DNA of 64,000 nt. Origin: Auanema rhodensis (lineage: Eukaryota > Animalia > Nematoda). Numbering within the stretch: position 1 is the stretch's first letter; every line of letters begins with the position of its first letter. The notes below the pieces were generated by a model. It was not told the origin of the DNA, made no database searches, and saw nothing but the letters and a program-made list of their open reading frames with translations. The stretch covers positions 15,190,001 to 15,254,000 of the forward strand of contig OZ059897.1 in assembly GCA_964057225.1 (NCBI GenBank). The letters run 5' to 3'. The translations under genes and the position numbers were made by a program. Of the stretch, positions 1-16,303 are shown piece after piece.

Positions 1-3000
1 TTTTTGAGAAAAGCGTTCATTCACGGGGCACAACGTGACTACAGCCTGAACTTTTTTGTGAACAAATCTTGTGGATGGTCTCGGTATAAACCCCATTTCC
101 GGAAAAGGCAGAAGTCTTAGCCAAATCTCACTAGGAATTTCAGATTCTACACATCTGAATACTCAACCTCAAACTATTTTTATTAGATTTTAGTGAATGA
201 TTTTTGAGAAAAGCGTTCATTCACGGGGCACAACGTGACTACAGCCTGAACTTTTTTGTGAACAAATCTTGTGGATGGTCTCGGTATGAACCTCATTTCC
301 GGAAAAGGCAGAAGTCTTAGCCAAATCTCACTAGGAATTTCAGATTCTACACATCTGAATACTCAACCTCAAACTATTTTTATTAGATTTTAGTGAATGA
401 TTTTTGAGAAAAGCGTTCATTCACGGGGCACAACGTGACTACAGCCTGAACTTTTTTGTGAACAAATCTTGTGGATGGTCTCGGTATGAACCTCATTTCC
501 GGAAAAGGCAGAAGTCTTAGCCAAATCTCACTAGGAATTTCAGATTCTACACATCTGAATACTCAACCTCAAACTATTTTTATTAGATTTTAGTGAATGA
601 TTTTTGAGAAAAGCGTTCATTCACCGGGCACAACGTGACTACAGCCTGAACTTTTTTGTGAACAAATCTTGTGGATGGTCTCGGTATGAACCTCATTTCC
701 GGAAAAGGCAGAAGTCTTAGCCAAATCTCACTAGGAATTTCAGATTCTACACATCTGAATACTCAACCTCAAACTATTTTTATTAGATTTTAGTGAATGA
801 TTTTTGAGAAAAGCGTTCATTCACCGGGCACAACGTGACTACAGCCTGAACTTTTTTGTGAACAAATCTTGTGGATGGTCTCGGTATGAACCTCATTTCC
901 GGAAAAGGCAGAAGTCTTAGCCAAATCTCACTAGGAATTTCAGATTCTACACATCTGAATACCCAACCTCAAACTATTTTTATTAGATTTTAGTGAATAA
1001 TTTTTGAGAAAAGCGTTCATTCACCGGGCACAACGTGACTACAGCCTGAACTTTTTTGTGAACAAATCTTGTGGATGGTCTCGGTATAAACCCCTTTTCC
1101 GGAAAAGGCAGAAGTCTTAGCCAAATCTCACTAAGAATTTCAGATTCTACACATCTGAATACCCAACCTCAAACTATTTTTATTAGATTTTAGTGAATGA
1201 TTTTTGAGAAAAGCGTTCATTCACGGGGCACAACGTGACTACAGCCTGAACTTTTTTGTGAACAAATCTTGTGGATGGTCTCGGTATGAACCTCATTTCC
1301 GGAAAAGGCAGAAGTCTTAGCCAAATCTCACTAGGAATTTCAGATTCTACACATCTGAATACCCAACCTCAAACTATTTTTATTAGATTTTAGTGAATGA
1401 TTTTTGAGAAAAGCGTTCATTCACGGGGCACAACGTGACTACAGCCTGAACTTTTTTGTGAACAAATCTTGTGGATGGTCTCGGTATAAACCCCTTTTCC
1501 GGAAAAGGCAGAAGTCTTAGCCAAATCTCACTAGGAATTTCAGATTCTACACATCTGAATACCCAACCTCAAACTATTTTTATTAGATTTTAGTGAATGA
1601 TTTTTGAGAAAAGCGTTCATTCACGGGGCACAACGTGACTACAGCCTGAACTTTTTTGTGAACAAATCTTGTGGATGGTCTCGGTATGAACCTCATTTCC
1701 GGAAAAGGCAGAAGTCTTAGCCAAACCTCACTAGGAATTTCAGATTCTACACATCTGAATACTCAACCTCAAACTATTTTTAATTGATTTTAAAAAATGA
1801 TTTTTGAGAAAAGCGTTCATTCACGGGGCACAACGTGACTACAGCCTGAACTTTTTTGTGAACAAATCTTGTGGATGGTCTCGGTATGAACCTCATTTCC
1901 GGAAAAGGCAGAAGTCTTAGCCAAATCTCACTAGGAATTTCAGATTCTACACATCTGAATACCCAACCTCAAACTATTTTTATTAGATTTTAGTGAATGA
2001 TTTTTGAGAAAAGCGTTCATTCACGGGGCACAACGTGACTACAGCCTGAACTTTTTTGTGAACAAATCTTGTGGATGGTCTCGGTATGAACCTCATTTCC
2101 GGAAAAGGCAGAAGTCTTAGCCAAATCTCACTAGGAATTTCAGATTCTACACATCTGAATACTCAACCTCAAACTATTTTTATTAGATTTTAGTGAATGA
2201 TTTTTGAGAAAAGCGTTCATTCACCGGGCACAACGTGACTACAGCCTGAACTTTTTTGTGAACAAATCTTGTGGATGGTCTCGGTATGAACCTCATTTCC
2301 GGAAAAGGCAGAAGTCTTAGCCAAATCTCACTAGGAATTTCAGATTCTACACATCTGAATACTCAACCTCAAACTATTTTTATTAGATTTTAGTGAATGA
2401 TTTTTGAGAAAAGCGTTCATTCACCGGGCACAACGTGACTACAGCCTGAACTTTTTTGTGAACAAATCTTGTGGATGGTCTCGGTATGAACCTCATTTCC
2501 GGAAAAGGCAGAAGTCTTAGCCAAATCTCACTAGGAATTTCAGATTCTACACATCTGAATACCCAACCTCAAACTATTTTTATTAGATTTTAGTGAATAA
2601 TTTTTGAGAAAAGCGTTCATTCACCGGGCACAACGTGACTACAGCCTGAACTTTTTTGTGAACAAATCTTGTGGATGGTCTCGGTATAAACCCCTTTTCC
2701 GGAAAAGGCAGAAGTCTTAGCCAAATCTCACTAAGAATTTCAGATTCTACACATCTGAATACCCAACCTCAAACTATTTTTATTAGATTTTAGTGAATGA
2801 TTTTTGAGAAAAGCGTTCATTCACGGGGCACAACGTGACTACAGCCTGAACTTTTTTGTGAACAAATCTTGTGGATGGTCTCGGTATGAACCTCATTTCC
2901 GGAAAAGGCAGAAGTCTTAGCCAAATCTCACTAGGAATTTCAGATTCTACACATCTGAATACCCAACCTCAAACTATTTTTATTAGATTTTAGTGAATGA

Positions 3001-6000
3001 TTTTTGAGAAAAGCGTTCATTCACGGGGCACAACGTGACTACAGCCTGAACTTTTTTGTGAACAAATCTTGTGGATGGTCTCGGTATAAACCCCTTTTCC
3101 GGAAAAGGCAGAAGTCTTAGCCAAATCTCACTAGGAATTTCAGATTCTACACATCTGAATACCCAACCTCAAACTATTTTTATTAGATTTTAGTGAATGA
3201 TTTTTGAGAAAAGCGTTCATTCACGGGGCACAACGTGACTACAGCCTGAACTTTTTTGTGAACAAATCTTGTGGATGGTCTCGGTATGAACCTCATTTCC
3301 GGAAAAGGCAGAAGTCTTAGCCAAATCTCACTAGGAATTTCAGATTCTACACATCTGAATACCCAACCTCAAACTATTTTTATTAGATTTTAGTGAATGA
3401 TTTTTGAGAAAAGCGTTCATTCACGGGGCACAACGTGACTACAGCCTGAACTTTTTTGTGAACAAATCTTGTGGATGGTCTCGGTATGAACCTCATTTCC
3501 GGAAAAGGCAGAAGTCTTAGCCAAACCTCACTAGGAATTTCAGATTCTACACATCTGAATACTCAACCTCAAACTATTTTTAATTGATTTTAAAAAATGA
3601 TTTTTGAGAAAAGCGTTCATTCACGGGGCACAACGTGACTACAGCCTGAACTTTTTTGTGAACAAATCTTGTGGATGGTCTCGGTATGAACCTCATTTCC
3701 GGAAAAGGCAGAAGTCTTAGCCAAATCTCACTAGGAATTTCAGATTCTACACATCTGAATACCCAACCTCAAACTATTTTTATTAGATTTTAGTGAATGA
3801 TTTTTGAGAAAAGCGTTCATTCACGGGGCACAACGTGACTACAGCCTGAACTTTTTTGTGAACAAATCTTGTGGATGGTCTCGGTATAAACCCCATTTCC
3901 GGAAAAAGCAGAAGTCTTAGCCAAATCTCACTAGGAATTTCAGATTCTACACATCTGAATACCCAACCTCAATCTATTTTTATTAGATTTTAGTGAATGA
4001 TTTTTGAGAAAAGCGTTCATTCACGGGGCACAACGTGACTACAGCCTGAACTTTTTTGTGAACAAATCTTGTGGATGGTCTCGGTATAAACCCCATTTCC
4101 GGAAAAAGCAGAAGTCTTAGCCAAATCTCACTAGGAATTTCAGATTCTACACATCTGAATACTCAACCTCAAACTATTTTTATTAGATTTTAGTGAATGA
4201 TTTTTGAGAAAAGCGTTCATTCATGGGGCACAACGTGACTACAGCCTGAACTTTTTTGTGAACAAATCTTGTGGATGGTCTCGGTATAAACCCCATTTCC
4301 GGAAAAAGCAGAAGTCTTAGCCAAATCTCACTAGGAATTTCAGATTCTACACATCTGAATACCCAACCTCAAACTATTTTTATTAGATTTTAGTGAATGA
4401 TTTTTGAGAAAAGCGTTCATTCACGGGGCACAACGTGACTACAGCCTGAACTTTTTTGTGAACAAATCTTGTGGATGGTCTCGGTATAAACCCCATTTCC
4501 GGAAAAAGCAGAAGTCTTAGCCAAATCTCACTAGGAATTTCAGATTCTACACATCTGAATACCCAACCTCAAACTATTTTTATTAGATTTTAGTGAATGA
4601 TTTTTGAGAAAAGCGTTCATTCACGGGGCACAACGTGACTACAGCCTGAACTTTTTTGTGAACAAATCTTGTGGATGGTCTCGGTATGAACCTCATTTCC
4701 GGAAAAGGCAGAAGTCTTAGCCAAATCTCACTAGGAATTTCAGATTCTACACATCTGAATACCCAACCTCAAACTATTTTTATTAGATTTTAGTGAATGA
4801 TTTTTGAGAAAAGCGTTCATTCACGGGGCACAACGTGACTACAGCCTGAACTTTTTTGTGAACAAATCTTGTGGATGGTCTCGGTATGAACCTCATTTCC
4901 GGAAAAGGCAGAAGTCTTAGCCAAATCTCACTAGGAATTTCAGATTCTACACATCTGAATACTCAACCTCAAATTATTTTTATTAGATTTTAGTGAATGA
5001 TTTTTGAGAAAAGCGTTCATTCACGGGGCACAACGTGACTACAGCCTGAACTTTTTTGTGAACAAATCTTATGGATGGTCTCGGTATGAACCTCATTTCC
5101 GGAAAAGGCAGAAGTCTTAGCCAAATCTCACTAGGAATTTCAGATTCTACACATCTGAATACCCAACCTCAAACTATTTTTATTAGATTTTAGTGAATGA
5201 TTTTTGAGAAAAGCGTTCATTCACGGGGCACAACGTGACTACAGCCTGAACTTTTTTGTGAACAAATCTTGTGGATGGTCTCGGTATGAACCTCATTTCC
5301 GGAAAAGGCAGAAGTCTTAGCCAAATCTCACTAGGAATTTCAGATTCTACACATCTGAATACCCAACCTCAAACTATTTTTATTAGATTTTAGTGAATGA
5401 TTTTTGAGAAAAGCGTTCATTCACGGGGCACAACGTGACTACAGCCTGAACTTTTTTGTGAACAAATCTTGTGGATGGTCTCGGTATGAACCTCATTTCC
5501 GGAAAAGGCAGAAGTCTTAGCCAAATCTCACTAGGAATTTCAGATTCTACACATCTGAATACTCAACCTCAAATTATTTTTATTAGATTTTAGTGAATGA
5601 TTTTTGAGAAAAGCGTTCATTCACGGGGCACAACGTGACTACAGCCTGAACTTTTTTGTGAACAAATCTTATGGATGGTCTCGGTATGAACCTCATTTCC
5701 GGAAAAGGCAGAAGTCTTAGCCAAATCTCACTAGGAATTTCAGATTCTACACATCTGAATACCCAACCTCAAACTATTTTTATTAGATTTTAGTGAATGA
5801 TTTTTGAGAAAAGCGTTCATTCACGGGGCACAACGTGACTACAGCCTGAACTTTTTTGTGAACAAATCTTGTGGATGGTCTCGGTATGAACCTCATTTCC
5901 GGAAAAGGCAGAAGTCTTAGCCAAACCTCACTAGGAATTTCAGATTCTACACATCTGAATACTCAACCTCAAACTATTTTTATTAGATTTTAGTGAATGA

Positions 6001-9000
6001 TTTTTGAGAAAAGCGTTCATTCACGGGGCACAACGTGACTACAGCCTGAACTTTTTTGTGAACAAATCTTGTGGATGGTCTCGGTATGAACCTCATTTCC
6101 GGAAAAGGCAGAAGTCTTAGCCAAATCTCACTAGGAATTTCAGATTCTACACATCTGAATACCCAACCTCAAACTATTTTTATTAGATTTTAGTGAATGA
6201 TTTTTGAGAAAAGCGTTCATTCACGGGGCACAACGTGACTACAGCCTGAACTTTTTTGTGAACAAATCTTGTGGATGGTCTCGGTATAAACCCCTTTTCC
6301 GGAAAAGGCAGAAGTCTTAGCCAAATCTCACTAGGAATTTCAGATTCTACACATCTGAATACCCAACCTCAAACTATTTTTATTAGATTTTGGTGAATGA
6401 TTTTTGAGAAAAGCGTTCATTCACCGGGCACAACGTGACTACAGCCTGAACTTTTTTGTGAACAAATCTTGTGGATGGTCTCGGTATAAACCCCTTTTCC
6501 GGAAAAGGCAGAAGTCTTAGCCAAATCTCACTAGGAATTTCAGATTCTACACATCTGAATACTCAACCTCAAACTATTTTTATTAGATTTTAGTAAATGA
6601 TTTTTGAGAAAAGCGTTCATTCACGGGGCACAACGTGACTACAGCCTGAACTTTTTTGTGAACAAATCTTGTGGATGGTCTCGGTATAAACCCCTTTTCC
6701 GGAAAAGGCAGAAGTCTTAGCCAAATCTCACTAGGAATTTCAGATTCTACACATCTGAATACCCAACCTCAAACTATTTTTATTAGATTTTAGTGAATGA
6801 TTTTTGAGAAAAGCGTTCATTCACGGGGCACAACGTGACTACAGCCTGAACTTTTTTGTGAACAAATCTTGTGGATGGTCTCGGTATGAACCTCATTTCC
6901 GGAAAAGGCAGAAGTCTTAGCCAAATCTCACTAGGAATTTCAGATTCTACACATCTGAATACCCAACCTCAAACTATTTTTATTAGATTTTAGTGAATGA
7001 TTTTTGAGAAAAGCGTTCATTCACGGGGCACAACGTGACTACAGCCTGAACTTTTTTGTGAACAAATCTTGTGGATGGTCTCGGTATAAACCCCTTTTCC
7101 GGAAAAGGCAGAAGTCTTAGCCAAATCTCACTAGGAATTTCAGATTCTACACATCTGAATACCCAACCTCAAACTATTTTTATTAGATTTTAGTGAATGA
7201 TTTTTGAGAAAAGCGTTCATTCACGGGGCACAACGTGACTACAGCCTGAACTTTTTTGTGAACAAATCTTGTGGATGGTCTCGGTATGAACCTCATTTCC
7301 GGAAAAGGCAGAAGTCTTAGCCAAATCTCACTAGGAATTTCAGATTCTACACATCTGAATACTCAACCTCAAATTATTTTTATTAGATTTTAGTGAATGA
7401 TTTTTGAGAAAAGCGTTCATTCACGGGGCACAACGTGACTACAGCCTGAACTTTTTTGTGAACAAATCTTATGGATGGTCTCGGTATGAACCTCATTTCC
7501 GGAAAAGGCAGAAGTCTTAGCCAAATCTCACTAGGAATTTCAGATTCTACACATCTGAATACCCAACCTCAAACTATTTTTATTAGATTTTAGTGAATGA
7601 TTTTTGAGAAAAGCGTTCATTCACGGGGCACAACGTGACTACAGCCTGAACTTTTTTGTGAACAAATCTTGTGGATGGTCTCGGTATGAACCTCATTTCC
7701 GGAAAAGGCAGAAGTCTTAGCCAAATCTCACTAGGAATTTCAGATTCTACACATCTGAATACCCAACCTCAAACTATTTTTATTAGATTTTAGTGAATGA
7801 TTTTTGAGAAAAGCGTTCATTCACGGGGCACAACGTGACTACAGCCTGAACTTTTTTGTGAACAAATCTTGTGGATGGTCTCGGTATAAACCCCTTTTCC
7901 GGAAAAGGCAGAAGTCTTAGCCAAATCTCAATAGGAATTTCAGATTCTACACATCTGAATACCCAACCTCAAACTATTTTTATTAGATTTTAGTGAATGA
8001 TTTTTGAGAAAAGCGTTCATTCACCGGGCACAACGTGACTACAGCCTGAACTTTTTTGTGAACAAATCTTGTGGATGGTCTCGGTATGAACCTCATTTCC
8101 GGAAAAGGAAGAAGTCTTAGCCAAATCTCACTAGGAATTTCAGATTCTACACATCTGAATACCCAACCTCAAACTATTTTTATTAGATTTTAGTGAATGA
8201 TTTTTGAGAAAAGCGTTCATTCACGGGGCACAACGTGACTACAGCCTGAACTTTTTTGTGAACAAATCTTGTGGATGGTCTCGGTATAAACCCCTTTTCC
8301 GGAAAAGGCAGAAGTCTTAGCCAAATCTCAATAGGAATTTCAGATTCTACACATCTGAATACCCAACCTCAAACTATTTTTATTAGATTTTAGTGAATGA
8401 TTTTTGAGAAAAGCGTTCATTCACGGGGCACAACGTGACTACAGCCTGAACTTTTTTGTGAACAAATCTTGTGGATGGTCTCGGTATAAACCCCTTTTCC
8501 GGAAAAGGCAGAAGTCTTAGCCAAATCTCACTAGGAATTTCAGATTCTACACATCTGAATACTCAACCTCAAACTATTTTTATTAGATTTTAGTGAATGA
8601 TTTTTGAGAAAAGCGTTCATTCACCGGGCACAACGTGACTACAGCCTGAACTTTTTTGTGAACAAATCTTGTGGATGGTCTCGGTATGAACCTCATTTCC
8701 GGAAAAGGCAGAAGTCTTAGCCAAATCTCACTAGGAATTTCAGATTCTACACATCTGAATACTCAACCTCAAACTATTTTTATTAGATTTTAGTGAATGA
8801 TTTTTGAGAAAAGCGTTCATTCACGGGGCACAACGTGACTACAGCCTGAACTTTTTTGTGAACAAATCTTGTGGATGGTCTCGGTATGAACCTCATTTCC
8901 GGAAAAGGCAGAAGTCTTAGCCGAATCTCACTAGGAATTTCAGATTCTACACATCTGAATACCCAACCTCAAACTATTTTTATTAGATTTTAGTAAATGA

Positions 9001-9746
9001 TTTTTGAGAAAAGCGTTCATTCACGGGGCACAACGTGACTACAGCCTGAACTTTTTTGTGAACAAATCTTGTGGATGGTCTCGGTATGAACCTCATTTCC
9101 GGAAAAGGCAGAAGTCTTAGCCAAATCTCACTAGGAATTTCAGATTCTACACATCTGAATACTCAACCTCAAACTATTTTTATTAGATTTTAGTGAATGA
9201 TTTTTGAGAAAAGCGTTCATTCACGGGGCACAACGTGACTACAGCCTGAACTTTTTTGTGAACAAATCTTGTGGATGGTCTCGGTATGAACCTCATTTCC
9301 GGAAAAGGCAGAAGTCTTAGCCAAATCTCACTAGGAATTTCAGATTCTACACATCTGAATACCCAACCTCAAACTATTTTTATTAGATTTTAGTGAATGA
9401 TTTTTGAGAAAAGCGTTCATTCACGGGGCACAACGTGACTACAGCCTGAACTTTTTTGTGAACAAATCTTGTGGATGGTCTCGGTATGAACCTCATTTCC
9501 GGAAAAGGCAGAAGTCTTAGCCAAATCTCACTAGGAATTTCAGATTCTACACATCTGAATACCCAACCTCAAACTATTTTTATTAGATTTTAGTAAATGA
9601 TTTTTGAGAAAAGCGTTCATTCACCGGGCACAACGTGACTACAGCCTGAACTTTTTTGTGAACAAATCTTGTGGATGGTCTCGGTATGAACCTCATTTCC
9701 GGAAAAGGCAGAAGTCTTAGCCAAATCTCACTAGGAATTTCAGATT
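1..9746. repeat. 200-bp tandem satellite, about 48.7 copies, open at the left edge of the window
   Basis: The unit TTTTTGAGAAAAGCGTTCATTCAC...TAGTGAATGA recurs at 1, 201, 401 ... 9601 with substitutions only. The last unit is cut at ...TTTCAGATT (9746). Confidence 0.99.
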
Positions 9747-9767
9747 TCTTATCTTAACCGTTTAAAA

Positions 9768-9950
9768 CCACTCAGATGAGCAGATTACAAAAGCTTTCCG
9801 TTGCCGGCTAGCTCGCGGTCATCAACTTCCGAAGAAATTCTTCACGCTCGCAACCTGCTCATTACCCTTTCACCGCGGTCAACATGTGTCGAAGTTTAAA
9901 AGGGAATGTGAAATACAAACTACAGAAATGATTCTGTGTAGTATGATTTC
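9768..9950 (-). ncRNA. U3: U3 snoRNA, copy 1
   Basis: Minus strand shows box A'/A (ATACT...ACAGAATCATTTCTGTAGT), box B GAGCGTGAAG (9840-9849), box C TTGATGA (9819-9825), and box D plus terminal stem TCTGAGTGG followed by TTTT. It also has a 13-bp stem with G.U pairs, and C(UUCG)G and GCAA tetraloops. The 5' end is approximate. Confidence 0.9.
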
Positions 9951-10138
9951 AAAGATTCACTGTTATCTCTGAACTAAAGGAATTGGCTCGCCGTATTTGG
10001 TATGGGATGTATACGCTGCTATACAGCCTGATGTAGCCTGACAGAGCTGGAAGTAGCATGGGGAGTGATGCAAGAAGGTCGAAGAAGTGAATTCCAGTTG
10101 AAACTCTTTCAGTTTCCTTGATGATTAACCGATTAAAA

Positions 10139-10321
10139 CCACTCAGATGAGCAGATTACAAAAGCTTTCCGTTGCCGGCTAGCTCGCGGTCATCAACTTC
10201 CGAAGAAGTTCTTCACGCTCGCAACCTGCTCATTACCCTTTCACCGCGGTCAACATGTGTCGAAGTTTAAAAGGGAATGTGAAATACAAACTACAGAAAT
10301 GATTCTGTGTAGTATAATTTC
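10139..10321 (-). ncRNA. U3: U3 snoRNA, copy 2
   Basis: Same boxes as copy 1, shifted by 371 bp, with one substitution near the 5' end. Confidence 0.9.
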
Positions 10322-10509
10322 AAAGATTCACTGTAATCTCTGAACTAAAGGAATTGGCTCGCCGTATTTGGTATGGGATGTATACGCTGCCATACAGCCT
10401 GATGTAGCCTGACAGAGCCGTAAGCAGCATGGGGAGTGATGCAAGAAGGTCGAAGAAGTGAATTCCAGTTGAAACTCTTTCAGTTTCCTTGATGATTAAC
10501 CGATTAAAA

Positions 10510-10692
10510 CCACTCAGATGAGCAGATTACAAAAGCTTTCCGTTGCCGGCTAGCTCGCGGTCATCAACTTCCGAAGAAGTTCTTCACGCTCGCAACCTGC
10601 TCATTACCCTTTCACCGCGGTCAACATGTGTCGAAGTTTAAAAGGGAATGTGAAATACAAACTACAGAAATGATTCTGTGTAGTATGATTTC
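10510..10692 (-). ncRNA. U3: U3 snoRNA, copy 3
   Basis: Same boxes as copy 1. Confidence 0.9.
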
Positions 10693-10880
10693 AAAGATTC
10701 ACTGTAATCTCTGAACTAAAGGAATTGGCTCGCCGTATTTGGTATGGGATGTATACGTTGCCATACAGCCTGATGTAGCCTGACAGAGCCGTAAGCAGCA
10801 TGGGGAGTGATGCAAGAAGGTCGAAGAAGTGAATTCCAGTTGAAACTCTTTCAGTTTCCTTGATGATTAACCGATTAAAA

Positions 10881-11063
10881 CCACTCAGATGAGCAGATTA
10901 CAAAAGCTTTCCGTTGCCGGCTAGCTCGCGGTCATCAACTTCCGAAGAAGTTCTTCACGCTCGCAACCTGCTCATTACCCTTTCACCGCGGTCAACATGT
11001 GTCGAAGTTTAAAAGGGAATGTGAAATACAAACTACAGAAATGATTCTGTGTAGTATGATTTC
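10881..11063 (-). ncRNA. U3: U3 snoRNA, copy 4
   Basis: Same boxes as copy 1. Confidence 0.9.
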
Positions 11064-11251
11064 AAAGATTCACTGTAATCTCTGAACTAAAGGAATTGGC
11101 TCGCCGTATTTGGTATGGGATGTATACGTTGCCATACAGCCTGATGTAGCCTAACAGAGCCGTAAGCAGCATGGGGAGTGATGCAAGAAGGTCGAAGAAG
11201 TGAATTCCAGTTGAAACTCTTTCAGTTTCCTTGATGATTAACCGATTAAAA

Positions 11252-11434
11252 CCACTCAGATGAGCAGATTACAAAAGCTTTCCGTTGCCGGCTAGCTCGC
11301 GGTCATCAACTTCCGAAGAAGTTCTTCACGCTCGCAACCTGCTCATTACCCTTTCACCGCGGTCAACATGTGTCGAAGTTTAAAAGGGAATGTGAAATAC
11401 AAACTACAGAAATGATTCTGTGTAGTATGATTTC
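11252..11434 (-). ncRNA. U3: U3 snoRNA, copy 5
   Basis: Same boxes as copy 1. Confidence 0.9.
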
Positions 11435-11622
11435 AAAGATTCACTGTAATCTCTGAACTAAAGGAATTGGCTCGCCGTATTTGGTATGGGATGTATACGC
11501 TGCCATACAGCCTGATGTAGCCTGACAGAGCCGTAAGCAGCATGGGGAGTGATGCAAGAAGGTCGAAGAAGTGAATTCCAGTTGAAACTCTTTCAGTTTC
11601 CTTGATGATTAACCGATTAAAA

Positions 11623-11805
11623 CCACTCAGATGAGCAGATTACAAAAGCTTTCCGTTGCCGGCTAGCTCGCGGTCATCAACTTCCGAAGAAGTTCTTCAC
11701 GCTCGCAACCTGCTCATTACCCTTTCACCGCGGTCAACATGTGTCGAAGTTTAAAAGGGAATGTGAAATACAAACTACAGAAATGATTCTGTGTAGTATG
11801 ATTTC
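11623..11805 (-). ncRNA. U3: U3 snoRNA, copy 6
   Basis: Same boxes as copy 1. Confidence 0.9.
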
Positions 11806-11993
11806 AAAGATTCACTGTAATCTCTGAACTAAAGGAATTGGCTCGCCGTATTTGGTATGGGATGTATACGTTGCCATACAGCCTGATGTAGCCTAACAGA
11901 GCCGTAAGCAGCATGGGGAGTGATGCAAGAAGGTCGAAGAAGTGAAGTCCAGTTGAAACTCTTTCAGTTTCCTTGATGATTAACCGATTAAAA

Positions 11994-12020
11994 CCACTCA
12001 GATGAGCAGATTACAAAAGC
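11994..12020 (-). pseudogene. U3 3'-terminal fragment (27 nt, box D only) at the array edge
   Basis: Matches the U3 3' end up to ACAAAAGC, then switches to unique sequence. Confidence 0.85.
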
Positions 12021-12028
12021 CTTCATTC
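12000..12028. other. Candidate programmed DNA elimination break/telomere-addition motif (SFE-like)
   Basis: AGATGAGCAGATTACAAAAGCCTTCATTC has ATGA/TCAT arms and GCC on the gene-proximal side. The bottom strand reads AGGCTT, a permutation of TTAGGC. It lies exactly at the repeat/unique boundary. Confidence 0.5.
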
Positions 12029-12311
12029 ACTATATTGTTTTCCGTATTCTTTTGTCAGTTGATTATAATACAATATACCAATGGGAATAACTGTAGATAT
12101 TCATTAGAAAATAAGTATAAACTTCGATCACAATATTTTTAGAAATTTAGTATTTCAGTTTACTTAAAGTAGTGAAGAATAACTTGATAGGAATGTTTGT
12201 GAGAAAGTGCATACGAAGATAAGCAAAGACTAGAATTAAGCGACTTTTACAAGCACGTATGGCCATTTGGCACACCTTTTTTTGGATAACATCGTATATA
12301 CAGAATAAAGG

Positions 12312-15300
12312 TTAGTTCAAGTTATCTAATAGATGCTTTAGTAGAGTGTCTAATAAAATGTAAGATAATTGCTTATTAAGACGAGGATATTGAAGACAGG
12401 CTACTATCTGTTCAGAGGCTTGTCGCAATTTTTGGCGACCTATTACGCGAACAGCATGAGATGGTATCTGTTCCTGTATAAATTCAAGTAGCCTTCTCTT
12501 CATCAATTCTTCTCGGAGCGATTTCTCCTATAAACATAAATCAATTATGCAGAATTTCATTTTCCAAACCTGTTGAGTAGGAACAGTGCCATCAGAATAG
12601 AAAAGAGACTGTTCTATCATTTGAACTAGTGAAACAAGAGAACCTCCTTCATAAACTTTCCGAAAAAGAGAAGTGAATATCATTTTGATAGCCCGATCAA
12701 TAGTAGTTTTGAATAGTATTCTGAAAAAAGTATCATTATTGTGGTATATGTATCTATCACTACCTAATGCAAGAAAAAATGCAGGACATCCAAGATGATA
12801 CTGGAGAAAGAACATCATGTAAAACAAGCATGCATGCATCGAATGGACTTCTGATATACAAAAATATAATTAGGTATACGAACAAATAAAATAAACCTTG
12901 TCCAAAGTCCCCTATCAGGGATATCTTCATCTGTTAATTTAAGACCCAAGCAGTTATTTCCATAAATTGAACTATAGGCAGATTGAGACAGAGGATCACC
13001 ACCAACACTCATGGAAGAAATACTACTGAATATTAAGAGAATGAATAAAATTACAAAAAATGAATGTTTATGAAAACCTGGATTCAGATGAAATGTCGAT
13101 TTTTTCTTTAAAACTTGCTGGTTTTTCGGGAGGAGCTAAAGTATTAGCTAGCATATTAAGTAAAAATGGTCTCAAGTGTTGCCCTTTCTCTCTACTTAAT
13201 TTTCCTGGCATTTTTTTGACAACCTGATAAAAACTTATGTTCAGAAGTTAGGATAATTTTCAATTCACCTTCCATGGATTTAAGTCACTTAACATTAAAA
13301 TATCTCTAAACTCATCTGGACTTGTAAGGAATGTAAATAAAAGATCTGAACGATACAATAATCTCTGAAATAAAAAAATGAGAAATCAAATCTCATATCT
13401 TAACTTTGAATTACTTGTTTACAAAGTGACGATACGAATGAAGAGAAGACCAAGCGATGTTGTTCTAGATACGCTCGATTTTTGGTTACAAAAGTCTAAA
13501 CATATAATATACAGTCTTATTTTTATATATCTTACCTTTCTAGGTGGTAAAGAGGAAAATCTTAGAGCATCACCGTGAAACTCAATAAGCTTCGCTTCCA
13601 GTACATAAAACTCAGTAAATCTTCTAAAATGAAAAGAAAAGATATATAGTATAATAATATTCATAGATTTCGTTTACCTATAAATACTCCATTGTTTAGT
13701 TTCATGCTCCTGAGCTTCATGTCTCTCCACATCAATAACATATATAAAAATAGTTCTTCCTAAACATAATAATAAATAAAATACCAAGATATCTATTAAT
13801 AATGTTAACCTGTTACATTGTCTCGAGTAGGTATAACTTTACTAATTCCCACTTTCCAACTATTCATGTTCTTAGTTGAATCTTCTATGGTGAGTAGAGG
13901 CTGCTCGGTTGGAGCTACTTCAGCAGAACCAGTACTACTGAACCCATCATCTTCTTCCTGAACAATCATGTAATATCTGTTTACGCTCATAAAGCTTACG
14001 TGATTAACAGAGGATTCAGCACAAGATTCTTCAGGATCTTCGCTGATATCGATAGTAGGAAGGCTAGAACTTGTTGGCATTGAAGAAGTAGAAGTACTCT
14101 ATAATTATAAATGAATACTGTTTGATAAACAGCCAACCTCTGAATATTCATCCTTATCAAATACAGCTGACTTCGACTTTTCTAGCTCATATGGAGTTTG
14201 TAAAGAAGAATATTGCGGATCTACAGAATAATAATAGAATAGTTTACTTATATAAAGAAATTATAACCTATACTATATTCATCACAAACAACTTCTTCAC
14301 CTTCAATGGAGCCTTCTGTTGAAAGAGTAAGTAAACGACGTAATTGAGATCTAAAATCAATACTTTAAGCTGATCGAGAAGTCAACACATGATACCTGAA
14401 CATATTAAAAGAGATAGCACGATCTGTTGTATTAGTTTTTCTAGACAAAGTAGGTTTGTCGATTAGCTCAATGACAGAAACAGGTGGACTTCCACAAAGA
14501 TATCTGTAAAACTTGGTGAGAATCTTCAAAATAATCAAATATTACCCAAGAAAAGAATCCGATTGGCAGAAAGGGATGACATATTGAACTTGGAGATGTT
14601 GATAAACAACTTGATAAGCCTTTTCAATGATTCTATCCAATTCTTTCATATCGTTAGTTTGCATTGTGGTTTTGAAATCCAGTACAATATCAGAATCGAA
14701 CGGGATTTGATCTGGAGCTCCTTCATGGACAAATTGACCGTATAACTGCCAAATATCATAAGAAATTTGAGATGACGACTCTTCCTAAAAAGTTAAATAA
14801 TAAATTAATTAAAATGATTTTCAATCTTAACCTTCTTCTGCATGCTCTCGTGAATACGAGTAGCCTCAGACAAAAAAGTTAGTTCATTCACAGGTCCTTT
14901 GATATCTTGTAAGTACAGGCGAAACATTGAAAACTGTCTAGCGTCTCGTAAAATCTATAAAAACCAATATCTACAAACTTGAAATAACCACTTACTTCAC
15001 TAAGTTTTAGCTGTAGTAAACTATCTGGAACGTTATCAACAGTTTCAGTTAGAGATTTCAAAAACGGAACTCTTGTTTCCTTTAAACATTAAAGTTTTAA
15101 AAATATTTCTTTAAAGAACTAACTGGTAAAACATATTCTACTGGTGACGCATATGAATCAAAAGCTAAAATGATAATATTGTTTAATACATCAGGGTCAG
15201 CAATTAAATCAAGAACTGGCAGAAGTAGGGAATTTACAACAAGTTCTCGGAGAAAATGTCGAGCAGAGTGTGAAGGCCAATTTCTCTATAACAAACGAAT

Positions 15301-16303
15301 AGTATAAAAGAATTAAATTTATTAAATATTACATTAGCACTCGAAATTCCTTTCCCATTTTCAAAATCATCATCATGAGCTCTACCAGATATCTTTGAGC
15401 TATCCACAAATAAGGGGATAATAGCATCAGATACCTTAAGTATCAATATCTGTTAGTTTTTATATAAATGAATCCTACTTGTCTTAAATAATTAATTTCT
15501 GTTTGTCTGCTTTTCATACTGTAATGAAGATCTGGCAATATTGCTTCACAAATACGATTCTCAGCTAGGTTTAATGGAATGTTCTTAAAGTGAATATAAT
15601 CTTTTTGAAAAAAAAAGTAAACGGACTTTATCTGGTAAGTTGTTAACAGCTTGAATGATTTTATGAAGATGTAAAGCAGCAGCTGGGATAGCTTCCTCAC
15701 TCACAATTGTAGGCAAATCAATCTTCAGAAGTTGATTTACAAATTTAGAGCAACCATATCGCAATTGATATCGGATTTCATTTAAAAACGCTCGATCTTG
15801 ACCAATACCGGAAGAATACCACTCAGCTACATATTGGCTAACAACGTGTTCTAATAGACTTTCGAGACTCTCATTCAAATCCGGAGGAACTTCAATATCT
15901 ACAGAAAAAGCTTGGAAATTATTAAGAATGTCTCTAGCATACCTTCCCAGGGCATTTGATGAGCTTCAAATTTAGATGATGATGTTTTCTGCGCATCATT
16001 TGGGAAATCAGGTTGAGCAGCACTCGGTGTTGAGCGCAAAAGCCAACTATCTATAAGACTTGATAAAAATTGGCCATTGGAATCAACTGCTATCCAATTA
16101 GCAAATTGTATTCCCAACAAGAGAGAAAAAATGCAAAGAGTAATTGAGAAGGCCCTGGAAATATTTTGCAAATTGAAAAGAAAAAATAGTTGTTACACAA
16201 ACCCTAATCCAGCCCATATTAGGATTGATATAATTAGAATGGGAATAGAAGATAACCATAGACGGTTGTCAGATTTCAACTTTTCCCATCGATCCCAATC
16301 CAT
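12312..16303 (-). CDS. snx-14: Sorting nexin 14 (TM-PXA-RGS-PX-Nexin_C), multi-exon
   Basis: Start MDWDRWEKLK with N-terminal hydrophobic segments. PXA region VVSQYVAEWYS, PX motif RRFTEFYVLEAKLIEFHG, C-terminal LQYPRLNKQLSYILLD. Confidence 0.9.

Follow-up and report, generated by a model that had tools for sequence, protein, structure and literature searches.

A tandem array of intact U3 snoRNA genes in Auanema rhodense, probably kept by somatic cells

Introduction

A 371-bp tandem repeat at the edge of satellite DNA in the nematode Auanema rhodense raises two questions: does it consist of satellite or of genes, and do somatic cells keep it? U3 is a box C/D RNA that guides early cleavages of pre-18S rRNA. 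It assembles with fibrillarin, Nop56/58, Snu13 and Rrp9 and is required for 18S processing; it is essential for production of the small ribosomal subunit and is needed by every cell. Genomes usually carry one to a few U3 genes in dispersed positions. Classic tandem arrays of snRNA-type genes include human RNU2, U1/U2 of sea urchin and Xenopus, and the nematode SL1-5S repeats. The repeat studied here lies in a stretch of 64,000 nucleotides (the window) of the A. rhodense germline assembly, and the original prediction read it as a tandem array of U3 genes that, if an adjacent break site holds, would be restricted to the germline.

Results

The 371-bp repeat consists of U3 genes

Tandem Repeats Finder (TRF) reported 6.1 copies of the unit with 99% matches, and a repeat search in the window placed six copies at a spacing of exactly 371 bp with a mutual identity of 97-100% (Table 1). 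When the window was scanned with the Rfam model of U3 (cmscan, RF00012), six full-length matches (model positions 1-219; E ~1e-16) were obtained on the minus strand, with scores of 82.1-83.4 bits, far above the gathering score of 34 bits. The six near-identical units with a minus-strand U3 that had been proposed are thus present; the proposed length of about 183 nt was roughly right, the actual length being 184 nt. The units are arranged head-to-tail and are very compact, with a spacer of 187 bp between U3 genes. The predicted location at the edge of satellite DNA also held, as the 3' flank of copy 1 joins a 200-bp satellite. At its promoter-side edge the array ends in a truncated seventh unit; the departure from the unit sequence is already seen at base 12021 and unique DNA begins at 12025.

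Table 1. Features of the U3 array and its surroundings (positions in the window)
Feature	Position	Strand	Evidence or remark
200-bp satellite, 48.7 copies, running off the window start; abuts the 3' side of the array	1..9746	+	TRF
Tandem array of 371-bp units, six complete and a truncated seventh	9754..12024	-	TRF, exact spacing
U3 copy 1, variant C114>U = U.G in the UUCG stem	9767..9950	-	RF00012, 83.4 bits
U3 copy 2, variant C6>U = U.G in the 5' stem	10138..10321	-	RF00012, 82.1 bits
U3 copy 3	10509..10692	-	RF00012, 82.9 bits
U3 copy 4	10880..11063	-	RF00012, 82.9 bits
U3 copy 5	11251..11434	-	RF00012, 82.9 bits
U3 copy 6	11622..11805	-	RF00012, 82.9 bits
PSE-like promoter box CCCATACCAAATACGGCG, -56..-39 of copy 1	9989..10006	-	common to dispersed U3 and U1 genes
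Same PSE-like box, copies 2-6	10360-10377, 10731-10748, 11102-11119, 11473-11490, 11844-11861	-	
Purine-rich element AAGGAAACTGAAAGAG, +19..+34 past the U3 3' end, copy 3; candidate snRNA 3' box	10475..10490	-	inferred
Truncated seventh unit, last ~32 nt of U3 and 13 nt of 3' flank	11980..12024	-	98% match, unit positions 327-371
PXA/PX sorting-nexin gene	12093..16171	-	spliced RNA contig; Pfam PXA 1.2e-11, PX weak

In the cmscan alignment the U3 boxes follow the canonical order A'/A, C', B, C, D, with the sequences CAGAAUCAUUUCUGUAGU (A), GGUGAAAG (C', variant), GAGCGUGAAGAA (B), UUGAUGACCGC (C) and UCUGAG (D). Like the U3 of RF00012, the gene combines a 5' pairing domain with a 3' protein-binding domain, and its box A complements the 5' end of 18S; it differs in its length of 184 nt against a 219-position consensus and in its non-canonical C' box, GGUGAA, which has the same form in all U3 paralogues of the genome. 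The consensus fold holds 63 pairs, including a B/C hairpin and a terminal C'/D stem, and its tetraloops cUUCGg and gGCAAc are the UUCG and GNRA loops expected beforehand. The variants C114>U of copy 1 and C6>U of copy 2 each turn a C-G pair into U.G and keep the pairing, as had been claimed for the UUCG stem of copy 1.

Box A of U3 (nt 14-22) forms a perfect 9-bp duplex with nt 9-17 at the start of the species' own 18S; this 18S 5' end was taken from its sole match in the assembly, which lies in a fragmentary context on an unplaced contig. At the place of the Rfam consensus CAGGaAUCA the U3 genes carry CAGAAUCA, and the facing 18S reads GAUUCUG as against GAUCCUG in the universal primer. For the U3 hinge, the best duplex with the sequence upstream of 18S was no better than with shuffles; this upstream sequence holds a second 18S-like fragment and is probably no true spacer. 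The six full-length matches at exact 371-bp spacing confirm that the 371-bp "satellite" is a tandem array of intact U3 snoRNA genes. That a repeat masker would hide it was likewise foreseen correctly, as intact U3 genes sit in a homogenised tandem repeat.

The array belongs to a larger U3 family on one autosome

Scoring of the 180.9-Mb germline assembly with the U3 model gave at least 44 matches. The array-type copies number ~58, all of them on C5 at 14.80-15.20 Mb, where arrays of about 34, 17 and 6 copies and a solo copy lie within 400 kb of one autosome (the 34-copy array at 14.94 Mb, the solo copy at 14.80 Mb). Two diverged single genes were found at C5:8.62 Mb and C4:16.49 Mb. Their identity to array-type genes is 88-89%, in U3 only; they are 11-12% different in the 3' domain, with differences for example at U3 nt 70-98, and four compensatory pairs distinguish the array-type from the singleton U3. 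The singletons thus carry compensatory stem changes, together with the same promoter box as the arrays. The U1 genes of this genome also form arrays, with a unit of 727 bp.

The 200-bp satellite flanks the 34-copy array as well, where its orientation is reversed and its junction differs. A segmental duplication of satellite, array and flank was considered and rejected, because the unique flanks of the other arrays are unlike the window and the satellite junctions differ.

Promoter box and candidate 3' box

Genes of the snRNA type have a SNAPc/PSE site at about -60 to -40 and a 3' box for Integrator-type ends, and their RNAs a trimethylguanosine cap. The sole upstream block common to the array U3 and the two dispersed U3 genes is a PSE-like box, CCCATACnAAATACGGCG, present at -56..-39 in every U3 paralogue; ACCCATAnCAGATACG occupies the same position in the U1 genes of the genome, four of which carry the upstream box at the same distance as the U3 genes. 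Downstream, the purine-rich element at +19..+34 is found at the same offset in copies 2-6 and is loosely conserved behind all U3 paralogues and U1 genes, which makes it a candidate snRNA 3' box. From such sequence features we infer the polymerase and the 3' processing of the array U3 genes.

Variation avoids the U3 RNA and the promoter box

Over 42 units, 38 variable sites fall in the spacer and 5 in U3 (Fisher p=5e-8), and no site varies between -61 and -38, the PSE-like box being invariant. Within the window alone the unit differences also lie mostly in the spacer, as anticipated, with 8 variable sites against 2 in U3, a split that is not significant by itself. Window-specific spacer variants include those at +8 and +46 past the U3 end. 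Units are 97-100% identical within the window and 96% identical to the array at 15.06 Mb, and the consensus of the window array differs from that of each other array at 13-14 sites. The U3 array therefore evolves in concert, homogenised and closer within an array than between arrays, in agreement with the proposed concertedly evolving amplification.

The array family is transcribed

Run X10 is a true RNA-seq data set, as shown by a spliced mRNA contig. Among its contigs is an array-type U3 of 261 nt that includes 74 nt of 3' flank; the ratio of U3 to satellite depth in this run is ~70 times the DNA value. No singleton-type U3 RNA contig was found in X10, though the 85% threshold would have admitted one. 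These data show that the U3 array family is transcribed. The array-type U3 contig has 3 differences from the window copies and fits the larger arrays better. The six copies of the window would be transcribed as members of this family. With its 3' extension, the contig may itself stem from read-through as a by-product.

The better fit of the contig to the larger arrays speaks for another explanation, in which the array is a U3-derived satellite of silent relics and the worm draws its U3 from the dispersed genes or the larger arrays only. The window array, truncated at its promoter-side edge, looks like a secondary offshoot with its own junctions, which fits this explanation too, as does the non-significant 8:2 split in the window. 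We nevertheless consider it improbable: the promoter box is kept in 6/6 copies, their U3 matches the commonest array sequence exactly or with wobble-equivalent changes, variation across the family avoids both RNA and box, and X10 yielded no RNA contig of the singleton type at the 85% threshold. The copies look functional, given the spacer-biased variation, the invariant box shared with U1, the compensatory stems, the 18S pairing and the array-type U3 RNA contig.

The array is probably retained in somatic cells

The original prediction was conditional on a break of programmed DNA elimination, proposed at 12000-12030: the array would then lie on the eliminated side, be present in the germline only and boost ribosomes in germ cells or oocytes. 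Satellites, which the array abuts, make up most of the eliminated DNA of A. rhodense, which also holds 5S, tRNA and U2 arrays (bioRxiv 10.64898/2026.08.27.747507), and the transition from satellite to genes resembles a compartment border. The U3 arrays themselves are unnamed in the preprint text on germline-restricted arrays (bioRxiv 10.64898/2026.08.27.747507). According to the same study, a palindromic SFE of 29 bp, built around a GGCTNAGCC core, marks the border of eliminated DNA and is found at all 28 breaks; sequencing of whole worms gives eliminated DNA a depth about eight-fold lower than that of retained DNA, and telomere-capped reads occur where the two adjoin (bioRxiv 10.64898/2026.08.27.747507).

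Break sites were scanned for with GGC-N3-GCC, 29-mer palindromes, a palindromised SFE and an 8-site weight matrix. The proposed break at 12000-12030 has neither the GGCTNAGCC core nor a palindrome, and the best score in the whole window was 9 bits versus 29-39 bits for genuine-looking sites of the genome. At the example given in the preprint, chromosome 5:16,502,174, the motif was absent on both C5 and C4 of this assembly, so the numbering differs between preprint and assembly. The motif core seen at C5:14,204,133 lacks palindromic flanks and probably matches by chance; with this match set aside, motif-core searches found no site in C5 13.0-16.88 Mb. The sole candidate break between the central eliminated block and this arm, at C5:12,988,340, is a core match only.

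In DNA run X4, the first array-specific word (11991) opens a 19.7-kb contig that extends into the genes and shows no loose end of telomeric type. Depths in X4, taken as per-contig means of assembled contigs and not suited to ranking, were 66.4 for the gene flank, 81.2 for the singleton U3 at C5:8.62 Mb, 68.7 for a diverged U3-unit contig (probably the solo locus at 14.80 Mb), ~47.5 for a second diverged copy and 4111 for the U3 core, which over ~54 assembled copies amounts to ~76 per copy. In run X9 the U3 core had a depth of 1118 versus ~18 for the flank. At this contig level, the arrays have ~1.1-1.2 times the depth of the gene flank per copy in X4 as in X9, and an eight-fold deficit relative to the gene flank or the dispersed U3 genes was not seen in the two independent DNA runs. 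With no SFE-like palindrome at the border or elsewhere in the window, a contig that crosses the border without telomere repeats, array depths per copy that equal the gene flank and the U3 genes elsewhere on the chromosomes, and no motif-core site found on C5 between 13.0 and 16.88 Mb, a germline-only array is very unlikely. As germline restriction is unsupported, the idea of a ribosome boost in germ cells or oocytes loses its basis.

Equal depth would show only a shared compartment if array and adjoining gene block were both eliminated, with the break further right, and 360 genes do lie within eliminated DNA, only ten of them above 3 TPM (bioRxiv 10.64898/2026.08.27.747507). The flank bears on this point. 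It comprises 52 kb of conserved, expressed genes, among them a sorting nexin, PIG-P, a prenyltransferase beta and an LRR protein, none transposon-derived. The sorting nexin is the first gene of this dense conserved block; it is well expressed, its introns are of 40-54 nt (GT..AG), and 68 nt separate the 3' end of its mRNA from the array. Conserved, expressed genes are almost never eliminated, and no gene of the window flank is named among the eliminated genes above 3 TPM (bioRxiv 10.64898/2026.08.27.747507). Moreover, the depth of the dispersed U3 genes at C5:8.62 Mb and C4:16.49 Mb equals that of the array, and U3 that was germline-only everywhere would deprive the soma of an essential RNA: since every cell needs U3, at least one U3 locus must be retained. 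Elimination of array and gene block together is thus very unlikely. All U3 loci have the same per-copy depth. From depth, absence of the motif and gene content, we conclude that somatic cells probably keep the array.

Discussion

The analysis makes it likely that the locus holds self-contained U3 genes of the snRNA type that have been amplified, are under selection, are transcribed as a family and lie in DNA kept by the soma. Each 371-bp unit would comprise a SNAPc-type PSE at -56..-39, the 184-nt U3 and, ~20-35 nt behind it, a purine-rich 3' box. Three arrays and a solo copy would have arisen as unequal crossing-over and gene conversion amplified and homogenised this unit, selection would hold RNA and promoter box constant while the spacer drifts, and transcription of the family would supply U3 for 18S rRNA processing. 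The six-copy array would then be an offshoot of the family that sits in somatically retained DNA, with a 200-bp satellite patch on one side and the sorting-nexin gene on the other.

The copy number is unusual for U3; the mechanism is ordinary, that of a tandemly amplified snRNA-type gene family. As in other tandem arrays of snRNA-type and small-RNA genes, one complete gene with its own upstream box fills each short repeat, the units run head-to-tail and evolve in concert, and the same genome has its 727-bp U1 arrays; the A. rhodense array differs in encoding U3 and in its very compact layout with a 187-bp spacer. U3 is single-copy in trypanosomatids, and Euglena has at least 14 U3 genes that are not in tandem (PMC2784804), in contrast to the ~58 tandem copies of A. 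rhodense. No earlier description of a tandem U3 array was found in the literature searched. With the germline-restricted ncRNA arrays of A. rhodense (bioRxiv 10.64898/2026.08.27.747507) the U3 arrays share the genome, the amplification of a small RNA and the adjacency to satellite, but motif, contig and depth evidence put them on the retained side.

Tentatively, and with more doubt than confidence, the genome may hold two functional classes of U3, in which ~58 somatically retained array genes would meet the bulk demand and the diverged singletons would have a stage- or tissue-specific role. If so, amplification of small-RNA genes in A. rhodense would not be confined to eliminated DNA.

About 58 tandem, promoter-bearing and selection-constrained copies are an unusual organisation for the U3 gene, and U3 joins tRNA, 5S, U1 and U2 among the small-RNA genes amplified in A. 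rhodense. For programmed DNA elimination, adjacency to satellite is by itself no mark of a break. This border between satellite and genes has no break signal, and it appears that the soma retains at least some tandem arrays of ncRNA genes and some patches of satellite. In annotation, masking of repeats would conceal what may be the main U3 genes of the worm.

Six intact U3 genes in tandem

A repeat search of the window identified six copies of the 371-bp unit (a 184-nt U3 snoRNA and a 187-nt spacer), spaced by exactly 371 bp and sharing 97-100% identity. When the whole window was scanned against Rfam at the gathering threshold, only six matches were obtained, all to U3 (RF00012), on the minus strand, covering model positions 1-219 and with scores of 82.1-83.4 bits (cut-off 34). 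In the Rfam alignment, boxes A, C', B, C and D follow one another in this order, C' being of a variant form (GGUGAA), and the array RNA is a bona fide U3. These full-length matches bear out the original prediction of intact minus-strand U3 genes in tandem; the UUCG and GNRA tetraloops that it described were found as cUUCGg and gGCAAc. Within the window U3 varies at two positions: copy 2 has C6>U and copy 1 has C114>U. Each change turns a C-G pair into U.G, as had been proposed for copy 1.

On the side opposite the promoter, copy 1 meets the satellite 13 nt past the U3 3' end. At this junction (9738-9790), the U3 3' flank and the satellite monomer are alike (GGAAACTGAAAG and GAATCTGAAATT, respectively), which suggests that array and satellite may have been joined through microhomology. 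The satellite also supplies a candidate 3' box look-alike for copy 1.

Location of the U3 genes and neighbouring features (plain numbers are window positions; C3, C4, C5 and C7 are contigs of the assembly)
Feature	Location	Strand	Copies	Remarks
200-bp satellite	1-9746			directly before the 371-bp array; Tandem Repeats Finder
371-bp tandem repeat	9754-12024		6.1	99% matches; Tandem Repeats Finder
Partial seventh unit	11980-12024			promoter-side array end; all that is left of U3 is its final ~32 nt
Sorting nexin (PXA/PX)	12093-15285			mRNA end 68 nt away from the array; introns uniformly tiny (39-54 nt)
U3 array of the window	within the window (C5:15,190,001-15,254,000)	minus	6	
U3 array	C5:14.948-14.961 Mb	minus	about 34	flanked by the 200-bp satellite also
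200-bp satellite	C5:14.940-14.948 Mb (fetched stretch L035:1-8311)			beside the 34-copy array; inverted, other junction than at window 1-9746
U3 array	C5:15.062-15.068 Mb	plus	about 17	
Solo U3 unit	C5:14.80 Mb	minus	1	92% identity to the unit
Singleton U3	C5:8.62 Mb	plus	1	88-89% identity, confined to the U3 region
Singleton U3	C4:16.49 Mb	minus	1	88-89% identity, confined to the U3 region
U1 tandem arrays	C3:15.86-16.08 Mb		at least 35 scored	727-bp period
Dispersed U1 copies	C3:5.75-6.15 Mb; C7:16.4 Mb			

The U3 family across the genome

A genome-wide count of U3 loci, proposed with the original prediction, was made over 180,911,798 bases and gave at least 44 scored matches to the U3 model. 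Combined with a DNA search and the retrieved loci, it yielded three arrays, a solo unit and two singletons. As judged from sequence, the window array is a separate offshoot and not a piece of a duplicated block, because its satellite junction is unlike that of the 14.948-Mb array, where the satellite is inverted, and no window match to the unique flanks of the other U3 arrays was found. The edges of the 14.961 and 15.062 arrays have their promoter-side flank in common in opposite orientations, and these two arrays, with 34 copies on the minus strand and 17 on the plus strand, look like the arms of an old inverted duplication. The common flank is ~70 nt long (L036:840-1000 and L037:6900-7060, at C5:14.961 and 15.062 Mb) and contains a variant promoter element, or PSE (see below), CCCATACGACATACGG, which resembles the element of the solo gene at 14.80 Mb.

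The array copies as genes

Five lines of evidence (variation, promoter box, covariation, target pairing and RNA) point to the array copies being genes rather than relics. Firstly, when 42 units are compared in register, the spacer has 38 variable sites and U3 has 5 (Fisher p=5e-8), which upholds the earlier view that differences lie mostly in the spacer; none of the 42 units varies between -61 and -38 (offsets counted from the U3 ends). Secondly, this invariant upstream stretch contains CCCATACCAAATACGGCG at -56..-39. This box is the only upstream block that the array units have in common with the two dispersed U3 genes, whose flanks cannot be aligned elsewhere, and in this genome four U1 genes have ACCCATAnCAGATACG at equal distance upstream. 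By position and conservation, the box fits a SNAPc-bound nematode proximal sequence element (PSE). Thirdly, four compensatory base-pair changes distinguish the 3' domains of array-type and singleton U3, and their 5' pairing domains are nearly identical. Fourthly, U3 nt 14-22 form a perfect duplex with nt 9-17 at the 5' end of the species' own 18S; the array U3 has CAGAAUCA where the Rfam consensus is CAGGaAUCA, and the 18S opposite has GAUUCUG in place of the GAUCCUG of the universal primer sequence.

Finally, the array family is expressed. Run X10 is genuine RNA-seq, with a 3.2-kb sorting-nexin contig from which ~18 GT..AG introns of 40-54 nt are spliced out, and it contains a 261-nt contig carrying the entire array-type U3 and 74 nt of 3' flank. 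DNA carry-over cannot explain this contig because the excess of satellite over U3 depth falls from about 170x in the DNA run X4 to only 2.5x in X10. No singleton-type U3 contig was present in X10, although the 85% threshold would admit one. As the RNA contig differs from the window copies at three positions and fits units of the larger arrays, expression is assigned to the family through these arrays, not to the six window copies. X10 also holds a 229-nt satellite contig with 11 differences, reflecting either low-level transcription or trace DNA.

The 18S 5' end has a single match in the assembly, on an unplaced contig (L043, G000:C12:43666-46685), with a second 18S-like fragment 235 nt upstream; in this assembly, most of the rDNA seems to be either unassembled or fragmentary.

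Each unit is most likely an independent PSE-driven gene of snRNA type, for which likeness to animal U3 leads us to expect transcription by polymerase II. The transcript continues past the T4 run after the U3 gene, and a candidate 3' box lies at +19..+34 after U3, where a purine-rich element is loosely conserved. Maintenance of the arrays is by unequal exchange, as shown by the constant period, by units that resemble those of their own array most closely, and by the 13-14 consensus differences of the window array from each other array. The RNA and promoter box are kept unchanged by selection.

Probable somatic retention of the arrays

The array had been proposed to be germline-restricted on condition that an adjacent break-site hypothesis holds, the break lying at 12000-12030. 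In Auanema rhodense, ~61% of the germline genome (180.9 Mb in the APS4 assembly) is lost from somatic cells, 28 internal breaks each carry an overlapping 29-bp palindromic motif (SFE), and depth is ~236-fold for retained and ~29-fold for eliminated DNA (bioRxiv 10.64898/2026.08.27.747507). At a confirmed break site on the window's contig (C5:17,155,156) the sequence is TTTGCTAAGGCTGAGCCAAAGCAAA, and genome searches recovered a family of similar sites with a GGCTNAGCC core; contig C8 has five break motifs, identical copies 3.5 kb apart, in agreement with the X chromosome of the preprint (bioRxiv 10.64898/2026.08.27.747507). Motif, palindrome and weight-matrix scans of the window found no break motif at 12000-12030 or in the satellite. 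The window maximum on a matrix of eight break sites, themselves scoring 29-39 bits, is 9 bits and lies inside a gene, and the proposed site is thus not upheld. An SFE-like motif occurs at C12:40133, about 5 kb from the 18S 5'-end match.

The core is matched on C5 at 11.52, 12.99, 16.88 and 17.155 Mb, and the interval from 13.0 to 16.88 Mb is free of matches. We conjecture that an eliminated central block at 11.52-12.99 Mb, its 12.99-Mb site being a core match only, would place 14.8-15.25 Mb in the right retained arm. Contig numbers or coordinates here differ from those of the preprint, because the motif is absent on C5 and C4 (16,501,974-16,502,374) at its example break, 'chromosome 5: 16,502,174'.

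An X4 contig of 19.7 kb starts at exactly 11991, where a 31-mer first includes base 12021, which is specific to the junction, and runs into genes without unmatched (telomeric) letters. Depths, all contig means, are 66.4 in X4 and about 18 (14-25) in the DNA run X9 for the gene flank; 68.7 and 16.2 for a contig of a diverged U3 unit that is probably the solo locus at 14.80 Mb; 81.2 and 18.5 for the C5:8.62 singleton, recognised by variants of its own at U3 nt 95 and 98; and about 47.5 in X4 for a second diverged copy. The shared U3 core reaches 4111 and 1118. Its exact word occurs 42-43 times in retrieved sequence, ~54 allowing for two further stretches, and dividing contig means by ~54 copies gives about 76 (X4) and about 21 (X9) per copy. 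This is 1.1-1.2x the gene flank in two independent studies, where germline restriction predicts ~1/8, and per-copy depth (contig means) is equal at all U3 loci. At least one U3 locus must be retained because every cell needs U3.

The C4 singleton (C4:16,487,323) lies 94 kb right of an SFE-core match at C4:16,393,169; its contig depth looks retained-like (about 47.5 versus 66 for the flank in X4), so a compartment border is unlikely at this core match.

The array is flanked by 52 kb of conserved genes, not transposon-derived (PXA/PX sorting nexin, PIG-P, prenyltransferase beta, LRR protein). Eliminated genes number only 360, mostly transposon-like, with only ten above 3 TPM (bioRxiv 10.64898/2026.08.27.747507). 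Combined, motif, contig, depth, essentiality and gene content indicate that the U3 arrays are probably retained in somatic cells. The array structure is real and tidy and its mechanism ordinary; germline restriction is unsupported, with no break motif, a contig crossing the border, depth close to that of the flank and conserved flanking genes. Applied to the 200-bp satellite, the motif and contig evidence would put at least the window's patch of it on the retained side, wherever a break may lie.

Comparison with other RNA gene arrays

U1, U2, 5S and SL RNA genes form classic tandem arrays; the present array is like them in organisation, with U3 as the gene, and U1 is tandem in this genome too. 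Eliminated DNA holds 5S, tRNA and U2 arrays according to the preprint, which counts 19,554 tRNA genes, mentions U2 and not U1, and has no U3 in its account (bioRxiv 10.64898/2026.08.27.747507). Because its ncRNAs were annotated by Infernal (bioRxiv 10.64898/2026.08.27.747507), the annotation probably contains these U3 loci without discussing them. We found no tandem U3 array described in the literature searched; the nearest report concerns Euglena, with at least 14 non-tandem U3 genes, and U3 is single copy in trypanosomatids (PMC2784804). New here are the selection test, the promoter box common to U3 and U1, a two-class picture of U3 (array-type and singleton), and evidence for somatic retention of the arrays, against the proposed break site.
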